DNA from: Lytechinus pictus
Lineage: Eukaryota
Direction of reading: 5' to 3'
Length of the DNA: 64,000 bases
NCBI RefSeq assembly: GCF_037042905.1
Contig: NC_087251.1
Location: forward strand, 16,368,001 to 16,432,000
Shown: one piece after another, positions 37,001-62,780 of the stretch
Layout: each line of letters starts with the position of its first letter
How positions within the stretch are numbered: position 1 is the stretch's first letter
Program-made: the position numbers and the translations under genes
Notes under the pieces: generated by a model
What the model was told of the DNA's origin: nothing
The model's input: only the letters and a program-made list of their open reading frames with translations
Database searches by the model: none

Positions 37001-40000
37001 GATAGATGAAGTAAAGATTATAGAAATTTCATTTTCACTATACAGTCTATGTCAATTGAAGATCAGAATTCATTATATGTGATTTGAATTAACTGATTTT
37101 ATCTGTTTGATTTACTATTGATCTGAACCTTATGAAAAATTAATACATGAGATACAATTTCATTCCTAGCAGATATAGTAAATGGGTACCCAGTAGAAAG
37201 AAATTCCTTGAATGCCTGATCAGGATAGCCATACAGGGAAATAGTATGCAGCACTTAGAAATATTGTCATAAGCACTTTATAAATGTGACATATTGCTAT
37301 CATTTAATTATTGTTGTTGTTATAATTATTAGAAAAAGTGAACTTGCACATCCCCCAAAATATAAATTTGATGTAAATTCTTCATGTTGAGCTAAAACCT
37401 AAAAGCGGTGTTAAATTGATAACCATTTTGACTTTAGACAGACACTTTTATGTCTTTCAAACTTATGATTATAGCACTACACTGGGAGGTTGCAAGATTG
37501 GTGCTGACATAATGGTGATGGTGTTGTACTACAGCACCAAACTTAACATAAAGCTGGCCTCATGATGAATCTCACGAGGTTAAACAATCAATAATGTGAT
37601 TTTAATCTTTTGTGTAAACTCATATTACAAGTTGGATTCAGGGAAGGCAATATGAATAATGCTTCAACCACCAACACTAGCACCAACATCAAAGCACCCA
37701 CCTGAGAGTAATGGCCCTTGCCACAGGATCATTGCTGTGGATGACAAAGAATATCCTCCTCACAAACTCATCCACATTGAGAATCTTATCAAGATGCTTC
37801 ACGCTCTGCTGAGAGACCTTCAAGACACACTGACGCAAGAAGTTATTTCTGGACATCAAATTGGACATGAAAACAGACAAATTAAGGAGGAGAACATGAG
37901 AATAGTATAGACAGAGCTGCTAACCCTTAAAATATTGTATTTGCTACATGTAAATAATAAATGATAAAAGGAATGATGATTGCAGTCACTCGAAGTGCAT
38001 CCAAAAAGGATAAATTAGTGGTACAGAACAAAATCTATAAAAAGGACACTTGAAATGCCTTTAGAAAATATCAAAAGTCCATCTGCCTTTGACCTCCTTA
38101 TTACTCCTATGAACTGTTAGTTATTTACAGATGTACATGTAAGGTAAATGTCCCAGTTTTCTGCTATTTAAATATAAATTGTATTCTGTATTGTTTGGTG
38201 TGTCCTAAAATTCAGAGTCTAATTCCTTCTGTGAAATGAAATTCTGTTTAAAACCTAACTGTCGCTTTGCGGACAAGGGCTAAACATGATGTATATTAGA
38301 TGGTTCCATTGTTTTGGTGTAATTTGATATATTTAATAGTAATAACCACATTATCCCCCTCCCCAATCATGTTCTTTATATTTGGTAAATTCTCTGTTCT
38401 TGAAATCTGTGAAATTTTCCAAAAACTTTTTATTTTGGTCTAACACCATGAACTACTAACCAAGTTAACTCCTTCCATATTATTCTTTGTTGCCAACATA
38501 CACAAAAATCACATCACATACACATACCCATCTCTGAAGACGTCAGCTAGCTTGAGAAATGCCGAGTTGATTAGGATGGGGAAGGGATACTTCTCAAACA
38601 GTCTGGGAAACCGAACAATAGCTTCACACTGCTCCCCAGCTTTGCTGGAATGAAGACCTGAAAGAATAACAAATATGGAAAATTATTTCTGCTGAAATTT
38701 GAATTCAAGTAGCTGTTGCGGTTGTTAAGTTGTTGTTGATATTATTGTTCGTGTTGGGTTATTATCACACCCAAATTATATCATTCAGCGTGTTTCTACA
38801 GAGAATCGTTAAAAACGGTTTATCTTTTCCAGAATCGAAAAACCTTATCGCCCTTAAACCAACCCATCTCTTCAGAGCAATAATCAGATTAACTCATATT
38901 CCGCATCGCAAATAAACAGATTAACATGGCAATAACCACCTCCCAGAGGTGGTTTTAAGAAACTATATTTTGCGCGATGCAGTTTATCAATAAACTGCAT
39001 TGCGTCTCTTTCTACAGGGAAGTTTTCCGGAATTCTTGATACTTATGAGGGTAATATTGTTCAACGATTCTCTGTAGAAACATGCCGTTTGGTATTCTCT
39101 CAGTGTAACAAGGTTGATGCGATGCCACATACAAGGCATTGTTAAATGTAAAGAATTCACATAACTCTGTATACAACCTTCTACAATTTAGCAGTCGTAT
39201 GATAAAATGCATCTATAACAAAGTACAATGCCATTCCAGGAATTCACAGTGTGACAACCGTCTCCACTAAAGCCACCAAAGGGAAACAGAAATAGTGACC
39301 ACTGTAGACAGGTTCTTTAACACACATTCTTTTCAATTCAGAGACAATTCTGTTAACTACCAAAGACAGGTTATCACTAAAGACAGGTTGCCACTAAGAC
39401 AGGTAAACTGTAAATTGAATGACATTGTGGTAATGATCTAACAATGAGTTCAACATAATCCCCCAAAATGGCAATGGATGTGCCAAATGATTTTGGTGTT
39501 ATTGCCAAGACATATGATGATGATGATGATGATGATGCACAGCATTTGTATAGCGCCATGTATCTGTCAAAGACATTCAAAGGCGCATTGGAGGAGCCAG
39601 CCAATCTGGGTCGCCTACAAGGGCGCGCACACAGAACTGTGACCCGCAGGTCTCTCCTCCCGATAACTGGGGGAATGCAGGTGGACCACTACACCGGGGT
39701 TTCCCCCTACTCTTATTCGAATAGTGCAGTGGGTTCTTAACGTGCAAAGGTGGTGATTCTCCTCTACACGGGGCCTCCATTTAACGTCCTATCCGAGGGA
39801 CGGAGTGTTTTCCACTGTAACATAGCCTGCATCTATGAAACATGGGAGAGACGTTTACACACAACGCACTGGCTTCAGTCATCCGCCCGAGGTGGACTCG
39901 AACCCACGATCTTTGGTTCGACGGGCAGACGCGTTACTGACTGAGCCAACTTCGCTCTCATGCAACATATGCAAAAGAAACATGGCATACTTAAAAATAT

Positions 40001-43000
40001 CTAAACAAGATTATGTACACTTTAATTTATATCTGTGTTATTCACCAGTAGCAGGCTTCTAAACTACACATTTGAGCACTCTGGTGAACAAAACATGAAA
40101 GCCAAATTTATAAAGAAATTTAATCAAGAATGCCTTTGAAAGTCTCATCTGCATTACACGATTCGATATAAACTGGGTTGCAAAAGAAACTTGTCAAACT
40201 TTTACAAGGACACTGTATAAATTCAACTCTGTCAAAATGAACAATATTTTTAACAGGCTATCTTCAATAATCTTTACTAAGCACATGTCAATTATTAGAA
40301 GAGATTGGGGTTCAATCACAGGGAGACTATAGCCCCTTACATCAATTGGTTTCTGAATCTAAAGTCACAAAAGAGCACAAAAAAAGGGCCAATAAAAATG
40401 AGATGGGATGAAACAAACTTCCCAATTTAGTTTAAGTGATTGACTCAATCACAAAGAAGCTACAGGAAGTTAACATCAAAATTTTAAATGACAGGAACAA
40501 TCACACTTCTTTAGAACAATCATGCTTCTTTGGTCTCAACACGTGTCTGGCTTTTTGTGACATTTGAGAAAATTTCAGAATTTTTTTAATGTTACATCTG
40601 TAGCTAATAACCTCTTTGTATCTGTCTGTGGCTGTTCCAGTCAATCTGTGATTGAACCAATCTTTTAACTATTGACATGTGCTTTTAAAAGATTACTGAA
40701 GCTAACCTGGGTAAATATATTGTTCCATTTTGAATGAGTGGAGTTTGTACAATGCCCTTGTAAAAGTTTCTTTTGGTACCCAGTTTACATGTAGCAGCAG
40801 TGCTGACTCGGAAAACAACTGAGATATAATCACGAAAAACACTGTTAATAAAATACTCAGTTCATTGACCCTAAATGACCTTGATCATGTGACCTAAAAC
40901 TTTTGCAAAATGATTGGTGATACTTGATTGCACTTATGTCAAAGCTCCATAAAAATAGGTCAATATACTTCTAAAGTTATGTCATTTCAAAAACTTAACT
41001 TTGGTTAAGATGTCAATGTTGAAACAAACAACATGGTCAAAGTCCATTGACCCTACATGACCTTTGACCTTAGTCATGTGAGCTGTAACTCATGTAAGAT
41101 TATCAATCAGTGATACTTGATAATCCTTATGTCCAAGTTTCTAAACAAGATCCATATACTTTATGAGTGCATTTCAAAACCTTCGTTAAGATTAAGATTT
41201 CATTGTTGATGCCGCCGCTGCTCTCAGCAAACACATCGTGCTACATTATGCAGGCAAGAAAAAAAAAGCAGATTCTAATGTGTTAAGTCATCCATCAATC
41301 ATTCATATTCTTTTACTTTGAGTCAAGATTTTGTGAAATTGGGTAAACTGCAGACTTGACACGGCCAGGTAAGTTTCTTATTCTTCTCCTTCTGTTCTGG
41401 CTCCCTCGTCATCTTCTTCTTAATCTTTGGCTTCTTCTTCGTCTACGTCTTCTCCTTCTTCTACATGTAGCATCTGTCTTCTGTAGGTCTAGTCTAGATC
41501 TACTTCTCTTTGTCTTCTTCATCTTCTTTGACTTTGCTTTCTCTTCTCTACCTCCTCCATCATCATCATCATCGTCATCCATAATCATCATCATTGATCA
41601 TCATCATCATTCATCATCATCATCAATCTTTTTCTTCTTCTTCTCCAGACTGGTGGCACCTGCGCTAGCACCAGAATGTCTCAGAGAATAGACATGCAAA
41701 ATAGAAAGGTGTTGTTCCTTTTGTTTTGGGCCTATATCACACCCTAGCTAGTCTCCTCAGTAGACACTTGGTGTTGAGAACTCAAAGGTCGAGAAACTGC
41801 TAACTCGCGTCTCTCAACAATTATGTACCTAGCAGCTAGTTACATAATTGTCAAGAGACTTGAGACGCGAGAGACATGACACTGCTTAATACCGATAAAC
41901 ATCATGGGCTGATTGCACGAAAGGGTCTTTCCAAGGACCGTCTTTCGTGTCACCCATCTTTTATGATAAGCTGTATGCGGGATATTTCTGAAATTAGGGT
42001 GGGCAATGGCACCAGATTTGTGCTGTAGACATGTGTCAAAAAAGTCAATGGGTGAATTTGCCTCAAATTTTCATTCTCTATTTTGAGTGCACAATGTAGT
42101 GAAATGTAGCAACATCTTCACATTTTCTGGTAGCCAAGTTGATTATCTATCAATGTAACACAGTGGCAAATCGTCCATAGACTGTGTGCAACGGATAGAC
42201 CGTCTCAGCTCAGCGAATCGCAGACCGCTGATTGGTCAATCGCGCAGATCACATGACTACGTGGTGGCCAAAATAATTCCCTCGGACTGCGTGCGAAAGT
42301 ATCGATAGCGATAACGATATCTGTTCACATTGTCTACGCGGGAAACGGTCTTGGTTTGCGATCGGATCGCTCCAGTATCGATCGAAAATTATCGAGACTC
42401 GGCAATTTCATGGATATTCACGCGACGCTCCGAAACCCGGAAATCAATTGACTTTGTGCACGTTGCGATAGACTCTACAAACTCCAACGAACACGATGCG
42501 ATATCGACGCTAATTCGTAAGATTTTGACAGAAAAGCAAGAAGTAATCGAAATTCGCTTACCTGTGCGGTATCGTTGAGAAAATAGATCCTCCGAGAATA
42601 CCTTTCATAATTCATATACATTATAGAGAAGTGAAATTCTTGGTCGATTTTGTACGAGGTGATAGAGAATTGCACACTTGTTTTGGTGGAATACTGTGTG
42701 GGGCTATGGAAGGCTTTCACTGCGCATGCTTACTATATTTTCATTCATAAATTGGCTCTCGGCAGTAGCTGGATGACGTCATGTAATAAGCAAAATATAC
42801 ATGCCCGCTAGCGTTAAACGCACCGCTATCCGTTCTATACAATTTGCCACTGTGTGTGACATGTTTCCATGGCAGCTCACATAGGCTCAAACAGTCTAGG
42901 TCAGCATAAAGACTTAAAAATGCCCATTTTCAGCCACTAGCCCACACAGTATAGCCTATGGGCACTCACACTATTGCGAGGTTAGTATATGCTATACGAA

Positions 43001-46000
43001 CCTCGCACAACCAACGTGTTTTTGTAGTGGATTTTAGAGTTGTCGTTAACATCGCTTCATAACGTGAATGATGTTAGCCGAAACCCATTCCGCTACTCAC
43101 CAGGGGTGGTATTCTGAAAACGTTCTTATCTTTGTTCTTATCTTTTATCTTATCTCATTGAGATAAGAAGAAGCTAAAATAATTGCAAATCGGTATTCTG
43201 AAAATCTTCTTATCTTTGTAAGGACTGCCTCCTTCTTATCTTCAACACGCCCATTTTTAGGATATTACCAATCAAAATGCGCTTTATATTGGCAGTTTAA
43301 CCAATAGAAGCGTCCCTTATGTCAAGAGAATATCATGGGCGCTGCGCGTACACTGTTTCTGGCGCATTGCGCGAAATAGGCAATTTATACGCAATGACTG
43401 ATTATTATTTTGAGACACGTGCATAAAATAAAGAAAGAAAGTAAAGAAAAAAGTAAATAAAGCAGGTACGAATATAAGGAATAAAATATGAAGAAAAGAA
43501 AGTAAGTAGGTAAGTAAGAAGACAGAAAAGTGTCAGAATGAAGGAGAAATTTAAAAAAAAAAGATGAAAGGAACAAAGCAGAAAATAATGAAAGAAATAA
43601 AGAGTAAACGAAAGTAAGCAAGCAAAAAAAAACAACTTAAAAATGAAAAAAATAAATAAAGAAAAAAGAATGAATAAAAGAAGGAAAAAGAAATAGAACG
43701 ATTATCAATGATAAAGCGAGGAAGAAAAAATAAAGAAAGAAAAGAAATAACCTTAAAGGAAAAAAAGTAAAAGGAAAAAATAAAAAGATTAAGAAAGGAT
43801 AAAATGAAGTAATAAAGAACCGAAAAAGAAAAAAGTTAGAAAAAACGAATGAAAGACAGTAAGAAAGAAAAGAAGGAATAAAAAATGTAAAAAGTGAAGG
43901 AAAAGAGAAAAAACAAAAATGAAACAAAGAAATAAAGATTAGAGAGAAAAAAATAAAGGATAATTAAAGCAAAAATAAAGACTACAGAAAGATAAAAGGA
44001 AAGAAAGGTAAATTCAAAGAAAGAAAAGGAACGAAAAGGAAAATTAAAAAGTCAGGAAAAGTGAAGAATGAATTTAAAAAAAAAACGAAAAATATTAATG
44101 GAAAGAATAAAGAAAAAGATTTTTAAATATTAATAGAAGAAAGATACAGGAAAGAAAGTAAGGAAAGAGAGCAAATAAAGAACGAACAAAAAAGAATGAG
44201 CGAAATAAAGAATAAAATAGAAGAAAGAAAGTAAATAAGACACAAGAGTGTCAGGAAGCAGAAATAAACAAAATGAAAGAAAGAACAAACGAACGAACGA
44301 AAACAGAAAAAAGAACCCAAAAATAAAAGGGAAAAAATAAAAGAAAGAAAAATAAATAAGGGAAGATACAAATTAAGGGAAGGAAGAAAGTAAGAAAAAG
44401 GGGGAAAAGGAAAAGCATGTAAAAAGACGAAAGAAAAACAAAATAAGGAAGAAAAAAAAAGAAAAAAAAAAGTGAAGGTAGAAAGAAAAAAAAAGGAAAG
44501 GATGAGAGAAAAGGGCAAAGAAAAAAAAGCACAAAGGGAAAATAAAAAAGGAAGAAAGATGAAGAATAAATGAAACAAAGCAAAAGAAAATTAAAGAAAT
44601 TAAAAGATTCAAAAAGAATAAAACAAAAGATATAAATGAAGAATGAAAGAAAGGAAGAAAGACAGACAAATAAAAAGGAAGAAAAAAAGAAAATAAATAA
44701 AGAAAAAAGGGATAGAAAAAAAGAGACGGGCAAAATAAAGGGTGAATAAAAGAAAGGGTGGGATGAATACTTGTGGGTACTTGTTACTACTAGTGACCAT
44801 CGAGTTTGAGCAAGAAAGAACGCGGACATCGTGATAACCCTCTAGCTATCTTAAATATTATCATAAATATCGTGAAAGATAAGAAAGAGAAAAGATAAGA
44901 ACGTTTTCAGAATACCACTTATCTTCATTTTGTTCTTATCTTTTTAGCGCGCTTTTGTATTATATGCGCGAGTAATACATTTACGCGCTCAGCATAGGAT
45001 GTTTAGCAAGATAAGAAAAAGATAAGAACAAAAGATAAGAAAAAGATAAGAACGTTTTCAGAATACCAATTTCAGATCGTGACGTAGATAAGAACAAAAT
45101 TAAGATAAGAACGTTTTCAGAATACCGCCCCAGGGCTTTTTCTGGTAGAAAGCGTTCCATTATAAATTTTTAACATATTTTTTTAATTTAAAAAGGACAC
45201 AAAAAAGAGCAAAATCGCTTACCTCCGCCTGGAAAGTGGCTTCGCACGTCTCTTCCACGGAAATAAAAGGAAGGTCGTTGGTGGCGCTAATACAGTTCGC
45301 AACCTTAATTCGGCTTGGTGGTATTTTTAAAACTAGATTCATTATTCATTGTATGCGCAATTCCAATAATTGTTTGATAAAATAGAGACCCCAATAAATG
45401 CAATAACTTAAAAAACATACTTTTTTATTATTTTTGCTGACGATAATACTTTTTGGAAAATATTCAAAACGATGACAAATTAAACAAAAAATATAGAAAA
45501 TTCTATGTACCTTGAACAAAGCCCAGCAAGTGCTACCGTTCGTTTGTCAATTAACGTTCCACCAAAGTCTTTACAGTAAAAAGATTGAACACTTTGCCGA
45601 CTTCGCGTAACGCTTTGCATCGATTTACGTGTAAGATAATTTCTGTGTCTAGTCTTTCAATTGTAGTGTCTTTGATATGAAGATAAATCGCGCGCCCTCT
45701 TTCGCTCATTAGACGAAAAATTTGAGAGCTAGAAAGGTAGCTCTCGTATTTTGTCAACGAGAAGAAAAATCAACGCTTAAATGACGCATTTTGTGTTTGA
45801 GGGATATTCATCAAATTATGAGGAATTGACTTCACATCGTTTCGTAAGTTTTGTAGGAGGACTTCATTCTGTAAGTCCTCGTATTAATTTTTCGCAAATT
45901 AACGTTATTTGTTGAATGCACCGTGCCTTCAATTATTCTGTAGTCGGCGGCTGAGATGTAGCTGTGTGTGCCTATGGGGATGGGCCAAAATGCTGTATGC

Positions 46001-49000
46001 AAATCCAGACACATTTTATGGAGCATTTAAGCCTTATGGAACAACTGCAGAATACCCGGACACTGCGTTACCTTATCGTTGGAGAGCCAACGCACAACGA
46101 TGTACTTAAGCTATCAAATCAGAAAATCAGCTATAATAAATAATTGAATGATTTACAACTTACAAGTATTTTTTGAATAGATTCTAAGTGTTCAGACTGC
46201 ACTGTAACGCTAACGATGCGAGCGCGCGCGATTAGTATGTAGACCAACAGTGTCCGCGATGCCAACGATGTGTATATTTTCGTAGTACGTGTAGGCCAAC
46301 ACAGTCCGCGATGCTAGCGGTGCGTTGGTGTCCGTAGTACAGGCCAACACTGCCCGCGATGCCAACGATCTATATATATATCTGTGTGCATCTGTAGTAT
46401 GTAGGCCGACATTGCCCGCGATGCCAACGATGTGTATATTTTCGTAGTACGTGTAGGCCAACACAGTCCGCGATGGTAGCGGTGTGTTGGTGTCTGTAGT
46501 CGGTACAGGCCAACACTGCCCTCGATGCCAACGATCTATATCTGTGTTCTGTAGTATGTAGACCAACAGTGTCCGCGATGCCAACGATGTGTATATTTCC
46601 GTAGTATGTGTAGACCAACATTGCCCGCGATGCCAACGATGTGTTGGTGTCTGTAGTACAGGCCAACATTGCCCTCGATGCCAACGATGCGATCATATCT
46701 GTAGTTGCCTATGTAAACCAACATTGCCCGCCATGGCAACGATGTGTTGGTGTCTGTAGTACATGCCAACAGTGCCCGCGATGCCAACGATGCGATCATA
46801 TCTGTAGTTTCCTATGTAGACCAACATTGCCCGCGATGCCAACGATGTGTTGGTGTCTGTACTGTAGAGTACAGGCCAACATTGCCCTCGATGCCAACGA
46901 TGTGAATGTATCTTTAGTAGGTATAGGCCAACAGCGCCCGCGATGCCAACGATGTGTTGGTGCCTGTAGTAGATGCAAACAGTGCCAACGATGCCAACAA
47001 TGTAAATGTATCTTTAGTACGTATAGGCCAACAGCGCCGGCCAGGATGCCAACGATGTGTTGGTGTCTGTAGTATAGGCCAACCTTGCCCGCGATGCCAA
47101 CGATGTGAATGTATCTTTTGTATGTATAGGCCAACAGCGCCCGCGATGCCAACGATGTGTTGGTGCCTGTAGTAGATGCCAACAGTGCCAACGATGCCAA
47201 CAATGTAAATGTATCTTTAGTACGTATAGGCCAACAGCGCCGGCCAGGATGCCAACGATGTGTTGGTGTCTGTAGTACAGGCCAACCTTGCCATCGATGC
47301 CAACGATGTGAATGTATCTTTAGTAAGTATAGGCCAACTTTGCCGGCGATGCCAACGATGTGAACGTATGTTTAGTATGTATATACCAACAGCGCCCGCG
47401 ATGCCAACGATGTGTTGGTGCCTGTAGTAGATGCCAACAGTGCCAACGATGTGAATGTATCTTACATAGGCCAACATTGCCGGCGATGCCAACGATGTGA
47501 ATATGCCTGTAGTAGAGGCCAACATTGCCGGCGATGCCAACGATGTGAATATGCCTGTAGTAGAGGCCAACATTGCCGGCGATGCCAACGATGTGAATGT
47601 ATCTTTAGTAAGTATAGGCCAACTTTGCCGGCGATGCCAACGATGTGAATGTATGTTTAGTATGTATATACCAACAGCGCCCGCGATGCCAACGATGTGT
47701 TGGTGCCTGTAGTAGATGCCAACAGTGCCAACGATGTGAATGTATCTTACATAGGCCAACATTGCCGGCGATGCCAACGATGTGAATATGCCTGTTGTAG
47801 AGGCCAACATTGCCGGCGATGNNNNNNNNNNNNNNNNNNNNNNNNNNNNNNNNNNNNNNNNNNNNNNNNNNNNNNNNNNNNNNNNNNNNNNNNNNNNNNN
47901 NNNNNNNNNNNNNNNNNNNNNNNNNNNNNNNNNNNNNNNNNNNNNNNNNNNNNNNNNNNNNNNNNNNNNNNNNNNNNNNNNNNNNNNNNNNNNNNNNNNN
48001 NNNNNNNNNNNNNATTGAATTCAATTCCCATTGAATTCCTTCAATGGGAATTAAAACTTTATTTCATATTTTAATGAAGAAAAAATGAAAATATTTCATG
48101 TATAAAAAATACAAAAGAAATAGAGAGTGAATGACATCGATCACCTCACTAACCAGGATATGCATATATTAAACTGTTTTGTGAAACCATACTTTGAAAC
48201 GCTTGCCAACGATGTTTTGAATGTTGCATTGCACGGTCACATCGTTGGTCGTTGGCTAGCGGCGCACCCAACGATGTATAGCAATAGCTAGTAGTAGTAG
48301 GTAATTTAAAAGAGTGTATTAATCTTGTACTATTGCACCTTCACATCGTGGGTCGTTGGTTAGCCAACGATGTTTTAAATGTTACATGGCACCGTCACAT
48401 CGTTGGTCGTTGGCTAGCGGCGCACCCAAGGATGTATATAGCTCTAGTAGGTAATTTAAAAGAGTGTATTAATCTTATTTTATAATATAACAGTTTCACA
48501 TCGTGGGTCGTTGGTTAGCCAACGATGTTTTGAATATTATATTGCACCGTCCGTACCGTCACAACGTGGGTCGTTGGCTAGCAGCGCACCCAACGATGTT
48601 TAATTATAGCTCTAGTAGTAGTCAAAGGGCAAAGGTCATTACGTATGGCCTGGATGCATTGCTCGTACGTACCGTCATACGTACGTACGTACGTAGTATA
48701 GTAGTAGTAGTAGTACCAGTAATGCATGTACGTATATAATAGTATGGATATATCTAGGCTATATACCATTGAATTAGTATATAGCTATAGGTCTTGACAT
48801 CGTTGTGTTGGCTGACCAACGATTGGGTAGTGAGCAGTGTCGGGGTATTCTGCAGTTAAGCCAGCCTTATTTTTCACTATTTACTTAGGAAATTTTATGG
48901 TAAGTTTTGAGCAATGTTTTTTTTTTTTTCGTTGTCCTACCTACTGAAATGTATGATGATAAACAAATACTAAATAGAATTCGTTAGCTGGCATTTAAAT

Positions 49001-49486
49001 CAATTTGTAATTGTAATTTGTATACGATTTCATGATATTATTACATCATTTCATAAATTGTCTACTTAAAGTTAAACGGATGAATAAAATATGTTTGCAG
49101 GTAATTCATTTAAAATGCGTTTCACATGGCGCATCATAATAAATGTGCGACACGAAAGACGGTTCTTGCAAAGACCCTTACGTGCAATCGGCCCCAGGCC
49201 ATGGCATATCCACGCCGCTACTCCCGGGCAGCGCGAAGCTAGACTCTTGGACTGGAGAAAGACGGGAGAGCTGAGGCAGCAGTTGTGCTGGACGTGCCTG
49301 TGCAGCTGCACAGCCTGCAGCAGGTCGCGGCGGGGGTCGCGGTCGGCAACTAGCGCAAATAGTGCTGCAATTTTGCTCATGCTCACCTTTATCAAGCTCA
49401 AGAAGAGCTGAATTTGCATCATGTTCTTGTTCTCCATATCCGACATCAGTACCGAAGTTTGACAAACGAGAAGTTGCACTTGACAT
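22071..49486 (-). CDS. INTS7: Integrator complex subunit 7, about 987 aa, 20 coding exons
   Basis: Exons (minus): 49486-49387, 38657-38528, 37848-37702, 36997-36813, 36388-36189, 35526-35295, 34871-34651, 34070-33974, 32800-32643, 32166-32035, 31254-31207, 29155-28997, 27659-27465, 26056-25953, 25523-25455, 24748-24592, 23748-23650, 23283-23175, 22759-22674, 22406-22071; total 2964 nt, phases consistent. Diagnostic peptides: GYGEQEHDANSALLELDKG, GEQCEAIVRFPRLFEKYPFPILINSAFLKLADVF, NNFLRQCVLKV, HSNDPVARAITLR, VASEHFYYWL, RYFYQALQSTSIKL, PHNDYFS, WRTGP. Confidence 0.96.
24172..24405. mobile_element. Nested Harbinger-like GGG...CCC MITEs
   Basis: GGGAGTGTTTCAT ... ATGAAACGCCCCC with internal palindromic TCCGACAA/TTGTCGGA, following a GGGTGGTGTTTCATAAAG end. 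Confidence 0.6.
24971..25258. mobile_element. MITE with 8-bp TSD (hAT-like)
   Basis: TIRs GGCTTGTGCCAT / ATGGCACAAGCC; flanks GATAGTAA / GATAGTAC (7 of 8 match). Confidence 0.7.
26222..27022. mobile_element. piggyBac-type MITE
   Basis: TTAA|CCCT ... AGGG|TTAA, with subterminal palindromes GGGGTCAATTTGACCCC at both ends. Confidence 0.85.
28424..28874 (-). mobile_element. Internally deleted copy of the AATT-flanked transposon at 32847
   Basis: AATT|CTCGCTACCCCAAATAG ... CTATTTGGGGTAGCGAG|AATT; near identical to 32847-33582 except that about 280 bp are missing. Confidence 0.88.
29286..29875. mobile_element. Kolobok-like MITE with long TIRs
   Basis: TTAA|AGGACAAGTCCACCCC ... GGGGTGGACTTGACCT|TTAA; about 140-bp imperfect inverted arms. 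Confidence 0.85.
30839..30985. repeat. Short foldback element related to the 8007-8570 palindrome
   Basis: Arms ATGGAAGTTTGCAGTAAACA / TGTTTACTGCAAACTTCCAT; shares GAATGTAGTCCTGAAAAGGACTG with about 8124-8147. Confidence 0.7.
32847..33582 (-). mobile_element. Non-autonomous DNA transposon (17-bp TIR, AATT TSD) carrying a SAP-like ORF fragment
   Basis: TIR CTCGCTACCCCAAATAG; ORF 33169-32828 begins MDKKSVSELKKILTDRGIPRNGKGWAELVTLA, which follows the SAP-motif pattern. Confidence 0.85.
38788..39085. mobile_element. MITE
   Basis: TIRs GCGTGTTTCTACAGAGAATCGTT / AACGATTCTCTGTAGAAACATGC. Confidence 0.7.
39513..39958 (-). mobile_element. tRNA-headed DeuSINE (Nin/Deu-domain) with L2-like tail
   Basis: Minus strand: A-box TGGCTCAGTCAG, B-box GTTCGAGTCC, central CGGATAGGACGTTAAA...TTAAGAACCCAC...TAAGAGTAGGGG...CCCCGGTG resembling the Deu domain, and tail GGCGCTATACAAATGC(ATC)n. 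Confidence 0.8.
40170..40790. mobile_element. Degenerate long-TIR (palindromic) MITE
   Basis: AAACTGGGTTGCAAAAGAAACTT...TTCAATCACAG is mirrored by CTGTGATTGAA...AAGTTTCTTTTGGTACCCAGTTT. Confidence 0.65.
40800..41265 (-). mobile_element. Diverged short copy of the satellite-bearing Helentron-like element at 56594
   Basis: TGACCTTTGACC units and the terminal TTGATGCCGCCGC...TATGCAGGCAAGAAAA match the reverse complement of 56594-57100. Confidence 0.7.
41395..41645. repeat. (CTT)n/(TCA)n low-complexity tract
   Basis: Runs of CTT and TCA trinucleotides; they generate spurious ORFs. Confidence 0.85.
42159..42854. mobile_element. Transib/RAG-like non-autonomous transposon with asymmetric RSS-like ends
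   Basis: Left end CACAGTG(42159-65) + 24 bp + AACGGATAG(42190-98). Right end (reverse complement) CACAGTG(42854-48) + 13 bp + AACGGATAG(42834-26). Terminal 13 bp are a perfect TIR. Flanks TGTAA / TGTGA (5-bp TSD, one mismatch). Confidence 0.82.
43104..45130. mobile_element. Harbinger-like non-autonomous element with a purine-rich core
   Basis: CAG|GGGTGGTATTCTGAAAACGTTCTTATC ... GATAAGAACGTTTTCAGAATACCGCCC|CAG (3-bp TSD). Repeated subterminal GATAAGAACGTTTTCAGAATACC; A/GAAA-rich tract about 43420-44760. Confidence 0.8.
46232..47821. repeat. Variant-unit minisatellite (about 40-50 bp, core GCCAACA..GCCCGCGATGCCAACGATG)
   Basis: More than 30 tandem cores separated by a few recurring spacer variants; runs into the N gap. 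Confidence 0.92.
47822..48013. other. Assembly gap
   Basis: Run of N. Confidence 0.99.
48200..48830. repeat. CCAACGATG / CATCGTTGG repeats in mixed orientation (probable transposon subterminal region)
   Basis: About 170-bp tandem duplication (about 48205-48520) with palindromes such as CGTTGGTTAGCCAACG; ends ...CCAACGATTGGGTAGTG. Confidence 0.6.
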
Positions 49487-49859: not shown

Positions 49860-52800
49860 ATGTCATCCAGGAATTTGATTACTGCTTATCACCAAGATCG
49901 CCGACGCTGGGCTTGGAAATCACAAACAAAGAATATTGGTGAGTTCAACTTTACTTTACTCATTTAGTTTAATGAGAATTTTGAGATAGTATTAGTAATG
50001 ACGTTCCACACTACCACAGTCAGTTATTGAGTTAACATGAAATTCATGTCATTTTCACAAAATTTTGCGTAGGCCTAGAGTTAATTTTGCACCTTAATAC
50101 TCCAAATTATGCAAAAATTGACATGGGTTAATGAAATCATGTGCTTGAATTTTCGCTATCGAGCTTTCAAGTTAATCTTTTTGAAAGGTCTTCTTGAGTT
50201 GAGAAATGTACGTCATAATTTTTAGACCCCACGCCCACAGGCTAACGTCGAGTTTATTATACCTCTATTACTTTGAAATCCATCAAAATTTTACCAAAAT
50301 TTACATTATACTTATAGGCCTAGTTTAGAATTATATAGGGGTCCTACTTCTTCTTCCATTAGACTTAGATTACATCCATTGATGTCAATGACCTAGACAG
50401 CTGGCAGCCGTCTGTTTCGAGAAGTTATTCAACATTTTTTTATTTTTTAAATTTCTCGTACACAGACGGCTCGCTATCATGTATAACCCAGGGAGCCCAG
50501 GGGCTTACCGTGTATTTGACCATACTAACGGGACTAGCGTGATTTATGGTCTAAATATTTCTCCAAATGAATTGTGAAAACAGAAATTATGCACTTACCA
50601 AGATTATATGGATGAAGGTATAACGAGTGGCATTTTCCTGACATCGAGGCACAGACTGGAACCTCAAAAAACGAAAAGTTCTCTCCTACCACAGTCTCGA
50701 TCGGCCATTTTTGTTATGAATCTTAACAAAATGGCCGATCGAGACTGGGGTAGAAGGAGAGAACAGTCCAGTTGGTGTGTTATCTGCCAATTTGAAAAAA
50801 GCCTTCCGTGCTAAGCTTAGACAAGCAAGAGCTGCTTGCAGGAATGGTCTTCTGTCAAGAATTGAGGGAGCCGACGAACACAACGACAGACTGTTCTATA
50901 CACTAGTGAAAGAACGAGGCCCTGGCTCTGATGTGCACCAACTCAACCCTGGAGGTCTCACCTACTCTGGGCCCGATATCATCCAGGGGTGGACTCGGCA
51001 TTTCCAGGATCTTGCCACCCCATCTGACTTCAGTTCTACACAGGCTCTGAATCCAACACATCCTGAGAATATGGACTCCCTTGCTATACATCATCCACAA
51101 GGGCTTGACCATCTCTTCACTTCAAAGGAGCTGTCCTTGGCCATCTCTTCATTAAGGCCTGACAAAGCTAGTGGTCCAGACAACATCTCTCCTGAGCACC
51201 TAATGTACACTGGGTGCACCACTAGGATCCTTATCCTCATCATGATGAACTGGATGATATATCTGAAGCACATTCCTCTCAGCCTTAAAGATGGCCTTGT
51301 CATTCCTCTCTTCAAAGGTGGGAGCAAGAATCCAACAGACCCAGGAAATTATAGGGGTATCACTCTGAATCCAGTCTTAGGAAAGCTGTTTGAGTTGTTG
51401 GTAAAGCCCAAACTTTCCCAACACTTACAAGAACACCAAATTCCAGACCCGTTGCAATTTGGTTTCCAACGAGAGAGGTCCTGTACTCTTACAGGTAAAG
51501 CACTTGACCTTCTCATCGAATCGTACAAGTCCCTCAACTAACCTCTGTACATAGCTATGTTGGATGCCCAGAAAGCATTCGACAGGGTCTGGCAAGATGG
51601 TCTCCTTTCGAAGATAGCAGCGACTCATCCACCTACAGTGCTGCTGGATACCATTACTGAATTTTACAACAGTTGCTCAAGCAAGGTATTCTGGAAGCAT
51701 GAAGTTGGTCCCTCCTTTCCTGTTCTCCAAGGAGTAAGGCAGGGGGAGTGCTTTCCCCCATGCTGTACACTCTCTACATCAACGACCTTATTAAGCGTCT
51801 GAGGGAGTGTCATCTTGCTGCTCAGTCGGCAACCTATATGTTGGGGTCATAGCCTTCGCGGATGACATTGCACTTCTTAGCAATGAGCCCATGGAACTGC
51901 AACAGATGTTGAATGTCACATTTAATTACACCCAGGAGTGGAATTACAAGATCGACCCCTCCAAGAGTGCAATCATTGTGCTTAATCAAGATCTTCAGAA
52001 CAGTGGCAACTCTTGGCAGATCAATGGTGAACCGATTGCACAGGTCTCCTCACACAAGCACCTTGGCATCGTCAGGACTGACATCTTCAGTATGACTACG
52101 CTGCTGATGCGATCACAAAGGGATACAGATCATTTTATGCCCTTGTGGGAACCTCACCACTAGGAGCAAGGGTAGTTCCCCATGTCGCTGCAAAACTGTG
52201 GAAAACTTTTTGTGTTACCAGGATGATCTTTGGCTGCTCTAGCATTCCCTTTTCAAGGGCAATGTTGAATCGCCTAGATAAAGCACAGGTTCACCTATTT
52301 AAGCGGATTCTGGGTCTACCAACAACATCAGCCGACGAAGCAGTATATCTTCTCACTGACATACATGTAATCCCAATGAGCCTGTTGGTCACCCAGGAAA
52401 AGCTCCTACTCCTGGGACAGACCTTGAGCACTGACATGGACAGGATAGAACGAAGGATGCTTCTTCATGGTATCTGTGCCAACACCAAATCCGTACAAGA
52501 ATGGCGTGCTGCACTTAAACAAAATTCAGCCTTCCCCACTTGATGAACTTGTAAGGAATCCCCCTAGCTACCATCTATGGAAGCGAATGGTTCAGTCGGT
52601 AGTGATTCAGGTATCCGGGGCCAGACAGCATAACGCCCTTACCAACAAGACATCCTTGTCCTTCTGGACTAGAACCCCTAAGCCAAAGGCGAAGGATCTG
52701 TACCCTGGGCACATTGCCAATCCAAATCTGAGTCAGCCATCACCATCCGTGCTCAGATCTCTTGCCAAGTCTATCTGACCCAAGCCAGGCTCGCCAAGAT

Positions 52801-58800: not shown

Positions 58801-61800
58801 ATAGCAATCTTGATACCAACGAATGTACATCTTTATGAGGGAAGAAGACTGAATCTGAAAAACTTGTCTAAGGATGCATCAATATATTAATTCTCACTTT
58901 TTTTTATTTGTATTATGTTATACAGGAAAAGGATCAAGTCTGCTTCCTGTATTATGGGTTAGTGATGCCCACATTGACCAGACTACAGCCAAAGCTCAGC
59001 CGAAACGTCGCAGGAAGTTAGCACCAAACCTCCCGACCATTAACTCATCCTACAGCGTCAGTGTGGTGCTCTTCCAGAAAGAGGACATCCTACTTTCGGC
59101 TGGCTCCGCAGATGGGTAAGAATAGAAGAATTCCTCCGAAACTCTCTGTGCTTAATTTCACATTCAATTTCACATATGATATTAACATTTGGTAATTAGA
59201 TTTACAGGAAAACTAACAAAACTGTATTAAAGCTACTGGTAAGTGTATAAAAATAGAAAAAAGTACTTGTCATCTTGTCATCACTTCAAAAATAATGATT
59301 TGAAATTGAAAATGGAAGCTTGGACGGACTGATACCTGTTTCAAGATGAATAATTTATTGGTGAAGTCATTTTTTTCCTGAACGCCCCCATTCTTCCTCA
59401 GGATTGTCAAGGTTTGGGATGTCCGTAAACTGAAGACTTCAGGATCATCAACCCCTACCCCTTCACATCAATTCCCATACAGAGGCACAAGCAACAGAAA
59501 GAGAGGTATGAGCTACGCTTACAAGTCTATCTGTGTAGAACATGAATGTGTCTTATCTATTGCTATATCATCATGAACTCCACCAAATCGAGTCATTTAT
59601 TTCTTATCATCTGCCAATACGTGGAGCATTATGAATCATTACTTTCATTTATAGATGTCCAGCAGTGTATTAAAATGAAAAGCATATGAAATGCACAGCT
59701 AGATTGTCTGGTAATTATCTTCCAATGTCCCGGTTTGGTGTAGGTGATATGTAATATATCTGTACAAGTAATATTTTCTTAATTCATGTTCATTGTTAAA
59801 TGTATACAAATTTTGCAAAAAAAGTATTGAGACAACTCTAAAGGTGTTTCTTTTCTTTTGTTATTTTATTATTCAAGTTTACAATTTTCCCCCTCCAAAT
59901 TGTGATGTATTTGATCTTGATAGAAGAAAAAAATTCTCGAGATTCATTTGTCGGACTCAAATCATAAAAAAATTATGAAATGCTTAATATGAATGAACAC
60001 ATTTCAAATTTTCATTTTGCCATTTCTTCAGAATTTCTTACATGTTTCTATATACCATGAAACGCATGCATTTGATGCCTAATTTACGAAACTTTATTCC
60101 TTGTAGGCTATTCCTCATTATCGCTGACATCAACACGAACCCGGGTGTTTGCAAGCTGCACAGACAGTGTAGTCTATGAGTACGATCTCAGTGGTGTGCT
60201 TCGATCGCAGCCCGTCGCTAGGTATCAGGGTCATGTGAACTCTACATTCTTTGTAAAAGCTGCCATCTCTCCTGACGACCTCTACCTTTTATCTGGGTCC
60301 AGTGACAACTATGCTTACATTTGGAAGGTAATATTAATCTGTTCTTTTTATTGTGTGATATACGTAAGGTATTTCTTGGTGTTTGCCTATCATTAAAGAT
60401 TACTTAATAGATGGAATAATGCATCTAATAATAATACTGACTTTGTATTTTGTTTAAGAATGAATATGGTACTTCCAGCTTGGAAATAAAACGAACAATC
60501 TGTAGTTGGTGCAGTATACTATGTTGCTAATTGTCTTTCATGTGTTTTTGTTATACCAATAACAGATAGGAGAGCCTGAATCCCCTTCAGTGATTTTAGA
60601 AGGTCATGATGCAGAGGTCACTTCTGTTACATGGTGCCCAACAGATTTCACTAAGGTAAAATCCCAGATAATCTATCAAATTTCTTCTTTTTGCCCAGTT
60701 CAAAGTTGCATAAATTTGTTTTTCTTATTTATCATTATTGTCTTCCTATTGATGTATAGGCCTTAGCGTATACATATATAAGGGGGGGGGGGGTTGGTTA
60801 CCTACATACGTACACAGGAGTGTACTACTTTGATTCCCAATATTTTTACCGAAAATTACTAATTGTAGGGTATCTTTTAAATTTCAATTTGTAGAATACA
60901 TTGCTGTTCATTTTGTCACCAAGGAGCAAGAAACTTATCTTCTTGATAAAAGGCCACGCTTGAATAAGGAATGGGAGCTTGAATGGCACATTTCAGTCAG
61001 AAACAATTTCTTAATGATTCATTATTGCAACAATGTTGACCAGATTTACATATTTTAAAGATTGAAATGGTTCTAATCTGAATGGGGTGATTTTCTTTGT
61101 CTTTGAAGGTTGTGACATGTTCTGATGATAACACTATGAGGATATGGAAGATGTCTACCGGTGAGAAGGTTGATGATGATGGGATCAATAGGGTCATAGG
61201 ATGGGCCAAGAGATGCAAAAGGAAATTAGTTAAAGAGAGTCAAGGTAAGGGACTTGTGTTCAGAATTGCCAGTATTCACAAACTATGATGTACTTAAATC
61301 AACTTACATGTAGATCTCACAAGGCAATTCCACGTAGATCTGTCACTTAGAGATCTTGTTGATTGGCTATGTGTCCACCTGTCTTGCACAATTGATTGTA
61401 AATATTAATATTTATTTTCATCTCTATGTTACCGGGTCCTGATTTTCTCTTATGATCATTCTATTTTTTTTTTCCTTTACTTTTTTACTTTAAATTCATA
61501 TATTCCAGTTGCCATAAATATACCAAATTACAATTCAAATCATTTCATATTTGTTGTTTTGCTTTCCAGGACATTAACTGAAGAAAAGAACTTGGCATAT
61601 TACAGTACAGTTTTATAACCTATCTCTTATTTTTGTTCTGTTGTATTTCAGTATTCTTGGGTATTTGTCAATCATGAAAAGATATTTCAATATATTTGTC
61701 TGAATTTATTGAAAGTTTTACATTAGTATTAAATCTTGCCCTCTCTCTTTGACAGAAACAGAAAGTGGGCCTTCACAGTCATGTTCAGAGAGTAGCAGGA

Positions 61801-62780
61801 CTACTCCTTCAACTGGTGAAGTGCCCCTTTCACCTCAACCCAGCCCTACACCATCTAGCACAAAGAAGAGAAGGTTTAGTTTGAAGGAATGGGTAACCAT
61901 CTCCCCCAAACCCTCAAGATCGGCTTCCCCAGTGCCATCACCCAAAAGACTCAAGAGTGAAAGCTCAGAAGATATTCAGGATTCACAAATAAATGGACAG
62001 AGTGAGTCAGTCCTGAAGAGGAAGGTGAATTCGGAAGAGAAAGAGGAAACCAGTGCTGTCAAGAAGATCAAAATTGGCAACTGCAAAGCCAAGTTTGCAG
62101 CATCAGCGAGTTCCTCTGTGCCTGCATCCGAAGTATCTGAGATTGAAGGTTCAGCATGCAGCCAGGGAATGCAAAAGAATCATGAAAGTGTATTGCCTCA
62201 GAAGAGAAAGATGGCTGCAGTCAATGCAAAGGACATTTGTACTGTGAAGAAGGCAAAAGTTGATAGTGTAGGAGCTGCTTCAGGTTTGCTGGAAACCTTG
62301 AAATGTGTTGATGATACAAGTGCAATACCAAGAAGTGATGACAATGGCCATGTGAAAGACACACCTCATAGGCCACTTGCAAGGGATCATGATGATAGTA
62401 GCGAGATTGGACAAGACAAAGAAAATCTAAAGGAAGACAGTGTCAGATTTGATCAGCCAAAGAATCCTCACACCAATGTCCAACGTTCCCCTCTCAAGGA
62501 TGATCTTCCAATGAACAGGCCAAAGGGCAGTTCCACCTCAAAATTGACAACAAAACGGAACATTGCATTCCACTTTCAGGCATCTCCCAGAGCGAGTGAG
62601 GAGCAGGTAAAGCTACTGAAGGAGGATGGGGGCAGTCCAGAGATGCAGCAGCAGAACTTGAAGGAGTGTTTCAAGGAGAAGAAGAGTGGAGGACTTGTCC
62701 CATCGAAAAGAAGAAGTATTACCAGACCCATTTCTGGTTACTTCAAGCCAATTGAAAAGAAATCTAAATCAGATACATGA
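49860..62780 (+). CDS. DTL: Denticleless/CDT2, WD40 substrate receptor of CRL4, about 769 aa
   Basis: Exons 49860-49938 (inferred from ATG, strong donor and phase), 56248-56463, 58114-58362, 58926-59115, 59402-59505, 60107-60327, 60566-60655, 61109-61244, 61756-62780; total 2310 nt. Peptides PPFACEF, WSAHNNAIFDVAW, TASGDQ, HKCSLKSV, GARDGSIMIWDDR, GHVNSTFFVK, SGSSD, EVTSVTWCPTDFTK, TCSDDNTMRIW match CDT2. Confidence 0.93.
50770..53205 (+). mobile_element. 5'-truncated non-LTR retrotransposon (RTEX/CR1-group-like) in DTL intron 1
   Basis: RT motifs KASGPDNI, IPLFKG, NYRGITL, QFGF, LDAQKAFDRV, QGVRQG, AFADDIAL; C-terminal CRLC...H...CPAL zinc knuckle; few stops or frameshifts; (GA)n tail. Confidence 0.9.
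53531..53900 (-). mobile_element. CR1-group LINE 3' fragment
   Basis: IEKVQGSAARFV...LGWDSL...YKFSFFARPVKIWNHLP. Confidence 0.8.
54343..55525. mobile_element. hAT-like composite MITE
   Basis: CAGGGATTCTCAAA..GTGGCGC at the left and GTGGCGC...TTGAGAATGGCTA at the right, with internal nested fragments. Confidence 0.5.
56594..57940 (+). mobile_element. Helentron/HINE-like element carrying a ~163-bp tandem array, in DTL intron 2
   Basis: T-rich insertion site, subterminal inverted repeat GTCTCGCCTGCA / TGCAGGCGAGAC, (GGC)n microsatellite, about 6 internal units containing GGTCAAAGGTCA. Confidence 0.75.

Follow-up and report, generated by a model that had tools for sequence, protein, structure and literature searches.

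Asymmetric ends of Transib and RAG-like transposons

Bipartite, asymmetric ends and 5-bp target-site duplications define the Transib and RAG-like (RAGL) transposons (PMC1131882, PMC9435367, PMC10629977, PMC7204232). Kapitonov and Jurka described a 38-bp Transib end that consists of a heptamer, a 23-bp spacer and a nonamer (PMC1131882). As several insect Transib families carry one end resembling the recombination signal sequence (RSS) RSS12 and one resembling RSS23, the 12/23 rule was already derivable from Transibs (PMC1131882, 2005). The same study reported Transib1_SP and TransibN1_SP from a sea urchin (PMC1131882). Tao et al. later described bipartite asymmetric ends as general for subgroup I Transibs and RAGL elements (PMC9435367), and Martin et al. 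described PflRAGL-A, in which a heptamer, the element TR2, an asymmetric spacer and a nonamer follow one another, with a 10-bp difference between the two ends (PMC10629977). Many echinoderms have intact Transibs, but mobile RAGL elements are not known from them (PMC10629977). Here, we describe a 696-bp element with ends of this type in intron 1 of the INTS7 gene of the sea urchin Lytechinus pictus, along with the family to which it belongs. The element lies in a stretch of 64,000 nucleotides (NCBI RefSeq assembly GCF_037042905.1, contig NC_087251.1, positions 16,368,001 to 16,432,000, forward strand), hereafter the window, and all positions are counted from its first letter.

A non-coding element with unequal ends

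The element (42159-42854) begins and ends with the heptamer CACAGTG, on the plus strand at the left and on the minus strand at the right, and each heptamer is followed inward by the same 9-mer, AACGGATAG. The two are separated by 24 bp at the left end, which measures 40 bp in total, and by 13 bp at the right end, which measures 29 bp, a difference of 11 bp (Table 1). The heptamers, the 9-mer and its spacing had been recognized in the initial annotation, which proposed a Transib/RAG-type transposon, and all of them are borne out by the coordinates. The accompanying remark that counting from one base earlier yields exactly 23 and 12 is arithmetically correct but reflects only a counting convention; the base that precedes the 9-mer differs between the two ends (C vs. 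G), and the dependable measures are the 11-bp difference and the full lengths of the ends. The perfect inverted repeat comprises 13 nt, CACAGTGGCAAAT, at both termini, and is separated from the 9-mer by 18 bp on the left and 7 bp on the right. Within the window, the exact 13-mer occurs at the two element ends only, the 9-mer is found nowhere beyond them (0.25 occurrences expected), and there is no further copy of the element. With a GC content of 45% and a CpG observed/expected ratio of 1.54, the element stands apart from the window (37% and 0.60); the ratio is close to 1.5 in all lineages of the family.

Asymmetric ends as a family trait

Additional copies were located with a chance 82-aa open reading frame (ORF) inside the element, which served as bait in a protein collection. 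Its matches were three ORF clusters from ENA marine-metagenome contigs, mostly of Tara Oceans, whose members led to 25 contigs. All 25 carry the same element family in unrelated flanks, and their copies form two further lineages, A and B, beside the window copy. DNA scans with two end patterns returned no match in JGI metagenomes, and none in viral contigs or prokaryote genomes.

The geometry of the ends is a property of the family. Across 18 distinct left junctions, the left spacer measures 24 bp, apart from 25 bp in contig L028 and 28 bp at the L003/L016 locus, and the right spacer is 13 bp in 14 of 14 right ends. None of these copies has two long or two short ends. The initial annotation had named symmetric spacers or a missing 9-mer in other copies as grounds for abandoning its proposal; instead, the long-left/short-right layout recurs at every junction recovered, and both it and the inner 9-mer are present in all three lineages.

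The terminal sequences, by comparison, have changed. The window copy and lineage A share CACAGTGGCAAAT, whereas both termini of lineage B read CACAACGAAC[T/A]AT; despite this replacement, lineage B keeps the CAC, the inner 9-mer and the 11-bp difference. Its two ends are identical over 29 bp save for one 11-bp insertion and one mismatch. Heptamer variants in the family include CACAATG, CACTATG and CACAACG, the first two of which agree with the published Transib consensus CACWATG and with the ProtoRAG heptamer, and CAC itself is kept at every end except one decayed left end (L027). The 9-mer is invariant in every left end and mutated in 7 of 14 right ends, mostly at its CpG. At the lineage-B right ends (L001, L002, L006-L013, L024-L026), the terminal 13 nt is variable (CACAACGAACAAT, CACAGTGACAAAT, CACATCGACAAGT and CACAACGACAAGT), even though the interiors of this lineage are 98-99% identical and nearly all of its left termini are one sequence. 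That both termini changed in concert while the geometry stayed fixed provides the strongest evidence from within the family for functional ends, which would be read by a matching transposase.

Recent mobility of the family

The element is real, multi-copy, non-coding and recently mobile. Copies are 98-99.4% identical within lineage B and 95.6-98% within lineage A, and such near-identity (about 96-99.4%) implies that the family has moved recently. The three lineages differ from one another by 13-20%: identity is 86-87% between the window copy and B, 82% between the window copy and A, and ~80% between A and B. Other repeats in the flanks of lineage-A copies recur in L. variegatus and L. pictus, and the source organisms are therefore echinoids. 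The family can thus be described as ~690-705-bp non-autonomous cut-and-paste DNA transposons of echinoids. The window copy carries ~5% private change, little of it CpG decay, and is a fairly young insertion in INTS7 intron 1 that encodes nothing.

One pair of contigs suggests a filled and an empty site. The flank at L015 1-82 is 98.8% identical over 82 bp to L007 210-300, where it runs on uninterrupted; L015 ends in ...GTTACGTCA before the element, and L007 reads ...GTTCCGTCA|GGCATGC... without it. This suggests either an insertion polymorphism or a paralogous empty site, with only the left junction recovered. In addition, one family copy is nested within another (L006/L008). The mates of this nested insertion and of the L015/L007 pair are absent among the fetched contigs. 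No paralogous empty site was found for the window insertion. The corresponding locus of L. variegatus (L022) holds no family copy, and alignment of its intron 1 is limited to window 38.5-40.7 kb and to exon 1, leaving window 40727-49335 without a counterpart in L022. The L. pictus locus of the INTS7 protein XP_063957446.1 (GCA_037042905.1, CM073232.1) is the window's own assembly and is 100% identical at window 38000-42582.

Two individual copies show further rearrangement. At L020 594-1395, a lineage-A copy is missing its right inverted repeat, beginning with the 9-mer, and adjoins other sequence that carries a 62-aa ORF, which we take to resemble the N-terminus of Harbinger/HARBI1-type proteins. 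Another lineage-A copy (L003, L004, L016) is flanked by inverted copies of a different repeat, GACCCCCTTTTTCA...CCAGAGCATCACC, and is probably nested in a second inverted-repeat element.

Conserved blocks of the interior

Five interior blocks are identical across the three lineages (42223-42235, 42239-42251, 42297-42321, 42718-42753 and 42768-42793). The conserved blocks include a reverse CCAAT box; 42297-42321 is a run of TATCGATA/CGATA motifs, 42718-42753 contains GCGCATGC and 42768-42793 contains TGACGTCA. CGATA/TATCG occurs 8-10 times per element vs. 1.5 expected, a 5- to 7-fold over-representation. These blocks may be extra protein- or transposase-binding sites or promoter-like modules. 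No convincing coding constraint was found inside the element; ORF1 was treated as non-coding, given a dN/dS of 0.4-0.65 over 77 codons and the absence of its ATG from the window copy.

Probable assignment to the Transib/RAG-like superfamily

The ends have the form expected of Transibs, namely 5'-CAC inverted repeats with a heptamer of the CACWATG/CACAGTG type and a terminal and an inner block ~12 or ~23 bp apart (here 13 and 24 bp). On this basis, the element is probably a non-autonomous transposon of the Transib/RAG-like superfamily with functionally constrained, asymmetric bipartite inverted repeats. As no transposase or long copy was found in the scans of JGI metagenome, viral and prokaryote sequences, it is the ends that carry the superfamily assignment. 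The type proposed at the outset is thus supported in part, by the CAC... termini and the family-wide asymmetric bipartite ends; no second copy confirmed the 5-bp duplication, and no transposase was recovered. Relative to the RAGL transposons, which hold convergent RAG1L and RAG2L genes between their repeats, the element, with no ORF above 82 aa, would be at most a non-autonomous derivative. Positions 8-10 after the heptamer, which are A-rich in the RAGL element TR2, read AAC/ACA in lineage B and GCA, then AAT, in the window copy and lineage A.

Several observations weigh against this assignment, the missing transposase among them. The inner 9-mer is not A-rich, unlike known nonamers. Its conservation is not unique, since conservation in some interior blocks equals or exceeds that of the ends, and the excess of CGATA/TATCG is reminiscent, by analogy, of the subterminal binding-site arrays of other superfamilies. 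Nor is the 9-mer an isolated island: lineage B repeats the whole 29 bp, and its ends are alike throughout apart from the 11-bp insertion, so that the division into heptamer, spacer and nonamer is an interpretation and separate recognition of the 'nonamer' is putative. Finally, the 5-bp target-site duplication was seen in one copy (n = 1), where it is imperfect and AT-rich, and a duplication of any length was present in 0 of 11 two-ended metagenome contigs.

In the window copy, the flanks, which the initial annotation had taken to fit a 5-bp duplication, match at 4 of 5 positions, at a chance of 2.0% (from composition) to 2.5% (empirically, at the same spacing). Matches at other lengths are 0/2, 1/3, 0/4 and 1/8. 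The mean 5-bp flank match in the 11 two-ended contigs, ~1.3/5, is at chance level. The absence of duplications from these contigs is attributed to chimeric low-coverage assembly. Contigs that share a left flank continue into different right flanks (L011/L013, L003/L016, L006/L008), the contigs L001/L006/L007/L026 combine a single right flank with differing left flanks, single-nucleotide polymorphism (SNP) patterns are mosaic among lineage-A contigs, and many flanks extend only ~50-120 bp, about a read length, around a pile-up of near-identical copies. Because the contigs are demonstrably chimeric, they were given no weight either way, and target duplications drawn from them were rejected as evidence on account of the swapped flanks and mosaic SNPs. 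A single cross-contig 5/5 flank match, TTCTT (L009 left and L024 right), is within chance expectation. Composition provides weak hints: GC is 0.50 at flank positions 1-5 vs. 0.40 beyond 10 bp (26 flanks), with the window's own flanks AT-rich; 14 of 26 flanks have G as the fifth base outward; and C is found at left -5 (60%) and at right +1 (55%). The left and right flank base-composition profiles do not discriminate among duplication lengths.

Alternative readings and a possible mechanism

The alternative with most in its favor retains a Transib/RAGL-type element but regards the 11-bp difference as a tolerated historical insertion, the terminal 13-17 bp being sufficient and no 12/23-like pairing being needed. 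For RAGL-B transposases, it has indeed been proposed that they depend mainly on the terminal 15-17 bp and that asymmetry does not affect them (PMC7204232), and the ends of lineage B differ by a single 11-bp block within an otherwise continuous 29-bp repeat. An indel of this kind could simply have been inherited by all three lineages, and half of the 14 right ends carry a mutated 9-mer. Conversely, lineage B replaced its terminal 13 bp at both ends and preserved the spacing and the 9-mer; the helical turn was lost or gained at none of the 18 left junctions and 14 right ends, every left end has an intact 9-mer, and ProtoRAG functionally requires bipartite ends (PMC8289069). We regard a tolerated insertion as possible, though on the unlikely side. 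Another alternative is a miniature element of a different CAC-ended superfamily, e.g., CACTA/Chapaev/Mirage (CMC), whose likeness to an RSS would be superficial. CMC ends likewise start with CAC, and the abundance of CGATA/TATCG in the interior resembles CACTA subterminal binding sites; the metagenome contigs, moreover, lack a 5-bp duplication. However, the heptamers fit CACWATG/CACAGTG rather than CACTA, the 29/40-bp ends mirror the 28/39 bp of the RSS and the 38-bp Transib consensus (PMC1131882), and in the single reliable copy the flanks match far better at 5 bp than at 2, 3 or 4 bp. The 2-4-bp duplication and CACTA-type ends that characterize CMC elements were not observed in this copy, and an origin of this kind appears improbable. 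The hAT superfamily was rejected, as the flanks match at 1 of 8 positions for an 8-bp duplication and, against the YARNG termini of hAT elements, the third terminal base is C, not G.

It is also conceivable that the family is the natural substrate of echinoid RAG1L/RAG2L, a pair regarded as domesticated and without inverted repeats of its own, and that a classical single-gene Transib is not the mover. PflRAGL-A has been described with the same order of heptamer, adjacent conserved block, asymmetric spacer and inner element (PMC10629977), and the echinoid RAGL genes are intact and expressed with no targets known (PMC8355894, PMC9885083). Against this stand the lack of a direct link, the A-richness of positions 8-10 in lineage B only, the finding that SpRAG1L and SpRAG2L together show no recombination activity (PMC8355894) and the existence of echinoderm Transibs with intact ends, which offer a simpler source (PMC1131882, PMC10629977). 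We therefore consider this explanation very doubtful.

Under the preferred assignment to the Transib/RAG-like superfamily, a Transib or RAG1-like DDE transposase supplied in trans would bind both elements at each end, cut next to CAC and insert the transposon through a 5-bp staggered cut. The fixed difference of one turn (11 bp) would place the inner elements of both ends on one and the same helical face, and the synaptic complex would hold a long end together with a short one, in the manner of the 12/23 rule. A rule that pairs unlike ends is plausible from the sequences. The stronger proposition, that an active sea-urchin transposase, possibly the RAG1L/RAG2L pair, mobilizes the family and needs a long end paired with a short one, has only a slim chance of being correct; if true, a working 12/23-type rule with an RSS-consensus heptamer and an unrelated 'nonamer' would exist in an invertebrate deuterostome.

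Host gene and neighboring features

The placement in INTS7 intron 1, likewise suggested by the initial annotation, was confirmed with the Pfam domains INTS7_N and INTS7_HB, found in minus-strand ORFs of the window, and by tblastn with echinoid INTS7 proteins, which located exons 1 and 2 (Table 1) and coding sequence down to ~22074. The NCBI model for L. pictus INTS7, XP_063957446.1, does not use the conserved exon 1 at ~49.4 kb and begins at an alternative first exon ~577 bp from the left end of the element, within a (CAT)n low-complexity stretch. Either an annotation artefact or an alternative start close to the CpG-rich element may account for this exon.

Intron 1 of INTS7 also contains a minisatellite that extends up to an N gap, beyond which a 158-bp repeat follows. 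A hairpin-forming ~62-bp repeat occurs twice in the window, and again in the flank of a metagenome copy (L018 10-35); it is probably another small echinoid repeat family. A WD40-repeat gene, whose last exon is long and disordered, is divergent from INTS7, an arrangement shared by L. variegatus (L022 1896-9574). We take the two genes to correspond to the head-to-head DTL-INTS7 pair that vertebrates have. A weak reverse-transcriptase match marks a 254-aa ORF that is probably a decayed retroelement.

Table 1. Positions of the element, its host gene and neighboring features in the window
Feature	Position	Strand	Remarks
Left flank TGTAA, putative 5-bp target-site duplication	42154..42158	+	4/5 identical to right flank
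Long (left) terminal inverted repeat, 40 bp	42159..42198	+	heptamer 42159-42165; 13-nt terminal element 42159-42171; spacer 42166-42189; 9-mer 42190-42198
Non-coding interior	42199..42825		no ORF >82 aa; no Rfam match
Short (right) terminal inverted repeat, 29 bp	42826..42854	-	9-mer 42826-42834; spacer 42835-42847; heptamer 42848-42854
Right flank TGTGA, putative 5-bp target-site duplication	42855..42859	+	
INTS7, exon 1 to exon 2	38527..49486	-	exon 1 ~49385-49486; intron 1; exon 2 38527-38658; Pfam and tblastn
Alternative INTS7 first exon (XP_063957446.1)	~41582	-	with 41558-41625
Hairpin-forming ~62-bp repeat	41906..41967 and 49133..49194		opposite orientation; 87% identity; DNA fold z = -3.7
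Minisatellite	46240..47821		~50-bp units, ~1.6 kb; N gap 47822-48013
158-bp repeat	48205..48551		
WD40-repeat gene	~50-63 kb	+	last exon 61749-62780
254-aa ORF	50777..51541	+	reverse-transcriptase match, E = 0.007

Comparison with known systems

The origin of the 12/23 rule is a live question, and asymmetric ends have been documented in insect Transibs, ProtoRAG, acorn-worm RAGL-A and algal RAGL. Echinoids possess RAG-like genes without known ends or targets, and a young, abundant echinoid family offers a concrete substrate. The family can be used to find the responsible transposase through matching termini in the L. pictus assembly, and to examine whether recognition of the spacer asymmetry depends on the nonamer sequence. 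It fits the expectation of the field and leaves the present picture unchanged. The end sequences gave no relevant match in the full texts and supplements searched, but the novelty suggested by the initial annotation was overrated, as Transib ends with a 12/23-like asymmetry have been in print since 2005 (PMC1131882).

Among the RAGL elements, PflRAGL-A of the acorn worm Ptychodera flava (PMC10629977) shares with the family a heptamer, an adjacent block, an asymmetric spacer and a nonamer-like element, as well as an ambulacrarian host; the spacers differ by 10 bp in PflRAGL-A and by 11 bp here. PflRAGL-A is autonomous (RAG1L and RAG2L) and has an AT-rich nonamer, whereas the element described here is non-coding and its inner element contains GC. 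ProtoRAG (27/31-bp spacers; PMC8289069) and AanRAGL (13-bp and 10-bp elements, 4/13-bp spacers; PMC9435367) also have bipartite asymmetric ends, with different spacer lengths and sequences, and a terminal element of ~13 bp with an inner one of 9-10 bp is common to both and to the family. Transib1_SP and TransibN1_SP of Strongylocentrotus purpuratus are sea-urchin Transib families with 5-bp duplications that are not listed among the asymmetric families (PMC1131882); this comparison is by description only.

The vertebrate V(D)J RSS has an identical heptamer, CACAGTG, its RSS23 and RSS12 measure 39 and 28 bp against the 40 and 29 bp of the ends described here, and the spacers of the family are within +/-1 of 12 and 23. 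In contrast, the vertebrate nonamer ACAAAAACC matches AACGGATAG at 2 of 9 positions, which sets the ends apart from V(D)J signals. Moreover, RSSs flank antigen-receptor gene segments, whereas the ends described here bound an intronic mobile element and have spacers that are conserved in sequence.

Insect Transibs (Transib5 of D. melanogaster; Transib2_AG and TransibN1-3_AG of A. gambiae) have in common with the family a CAC heptamer (PMC1131882, PMC8355894), a spacer of ~12 bp at one end and ~23 bp at the other before a second conserved block, non-autonomous derivatives and an expected 5-bp duplication. The family differs in its echinoid (deuterostome) host, its heptamer (CACAGTG, not CACAATG), its inner AACGGATAG, which is not A-rich, and its 13/24-bp spacers. 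Since insect Transibs, acorn-worm RAGL-A, ProtoRAG and others are already on record with 12/23-like asymmetric ends, the family is a new example rather than a new kind; among the transposons compared, only it and the insect Transibs have spacers within +/-1 of 12/23.

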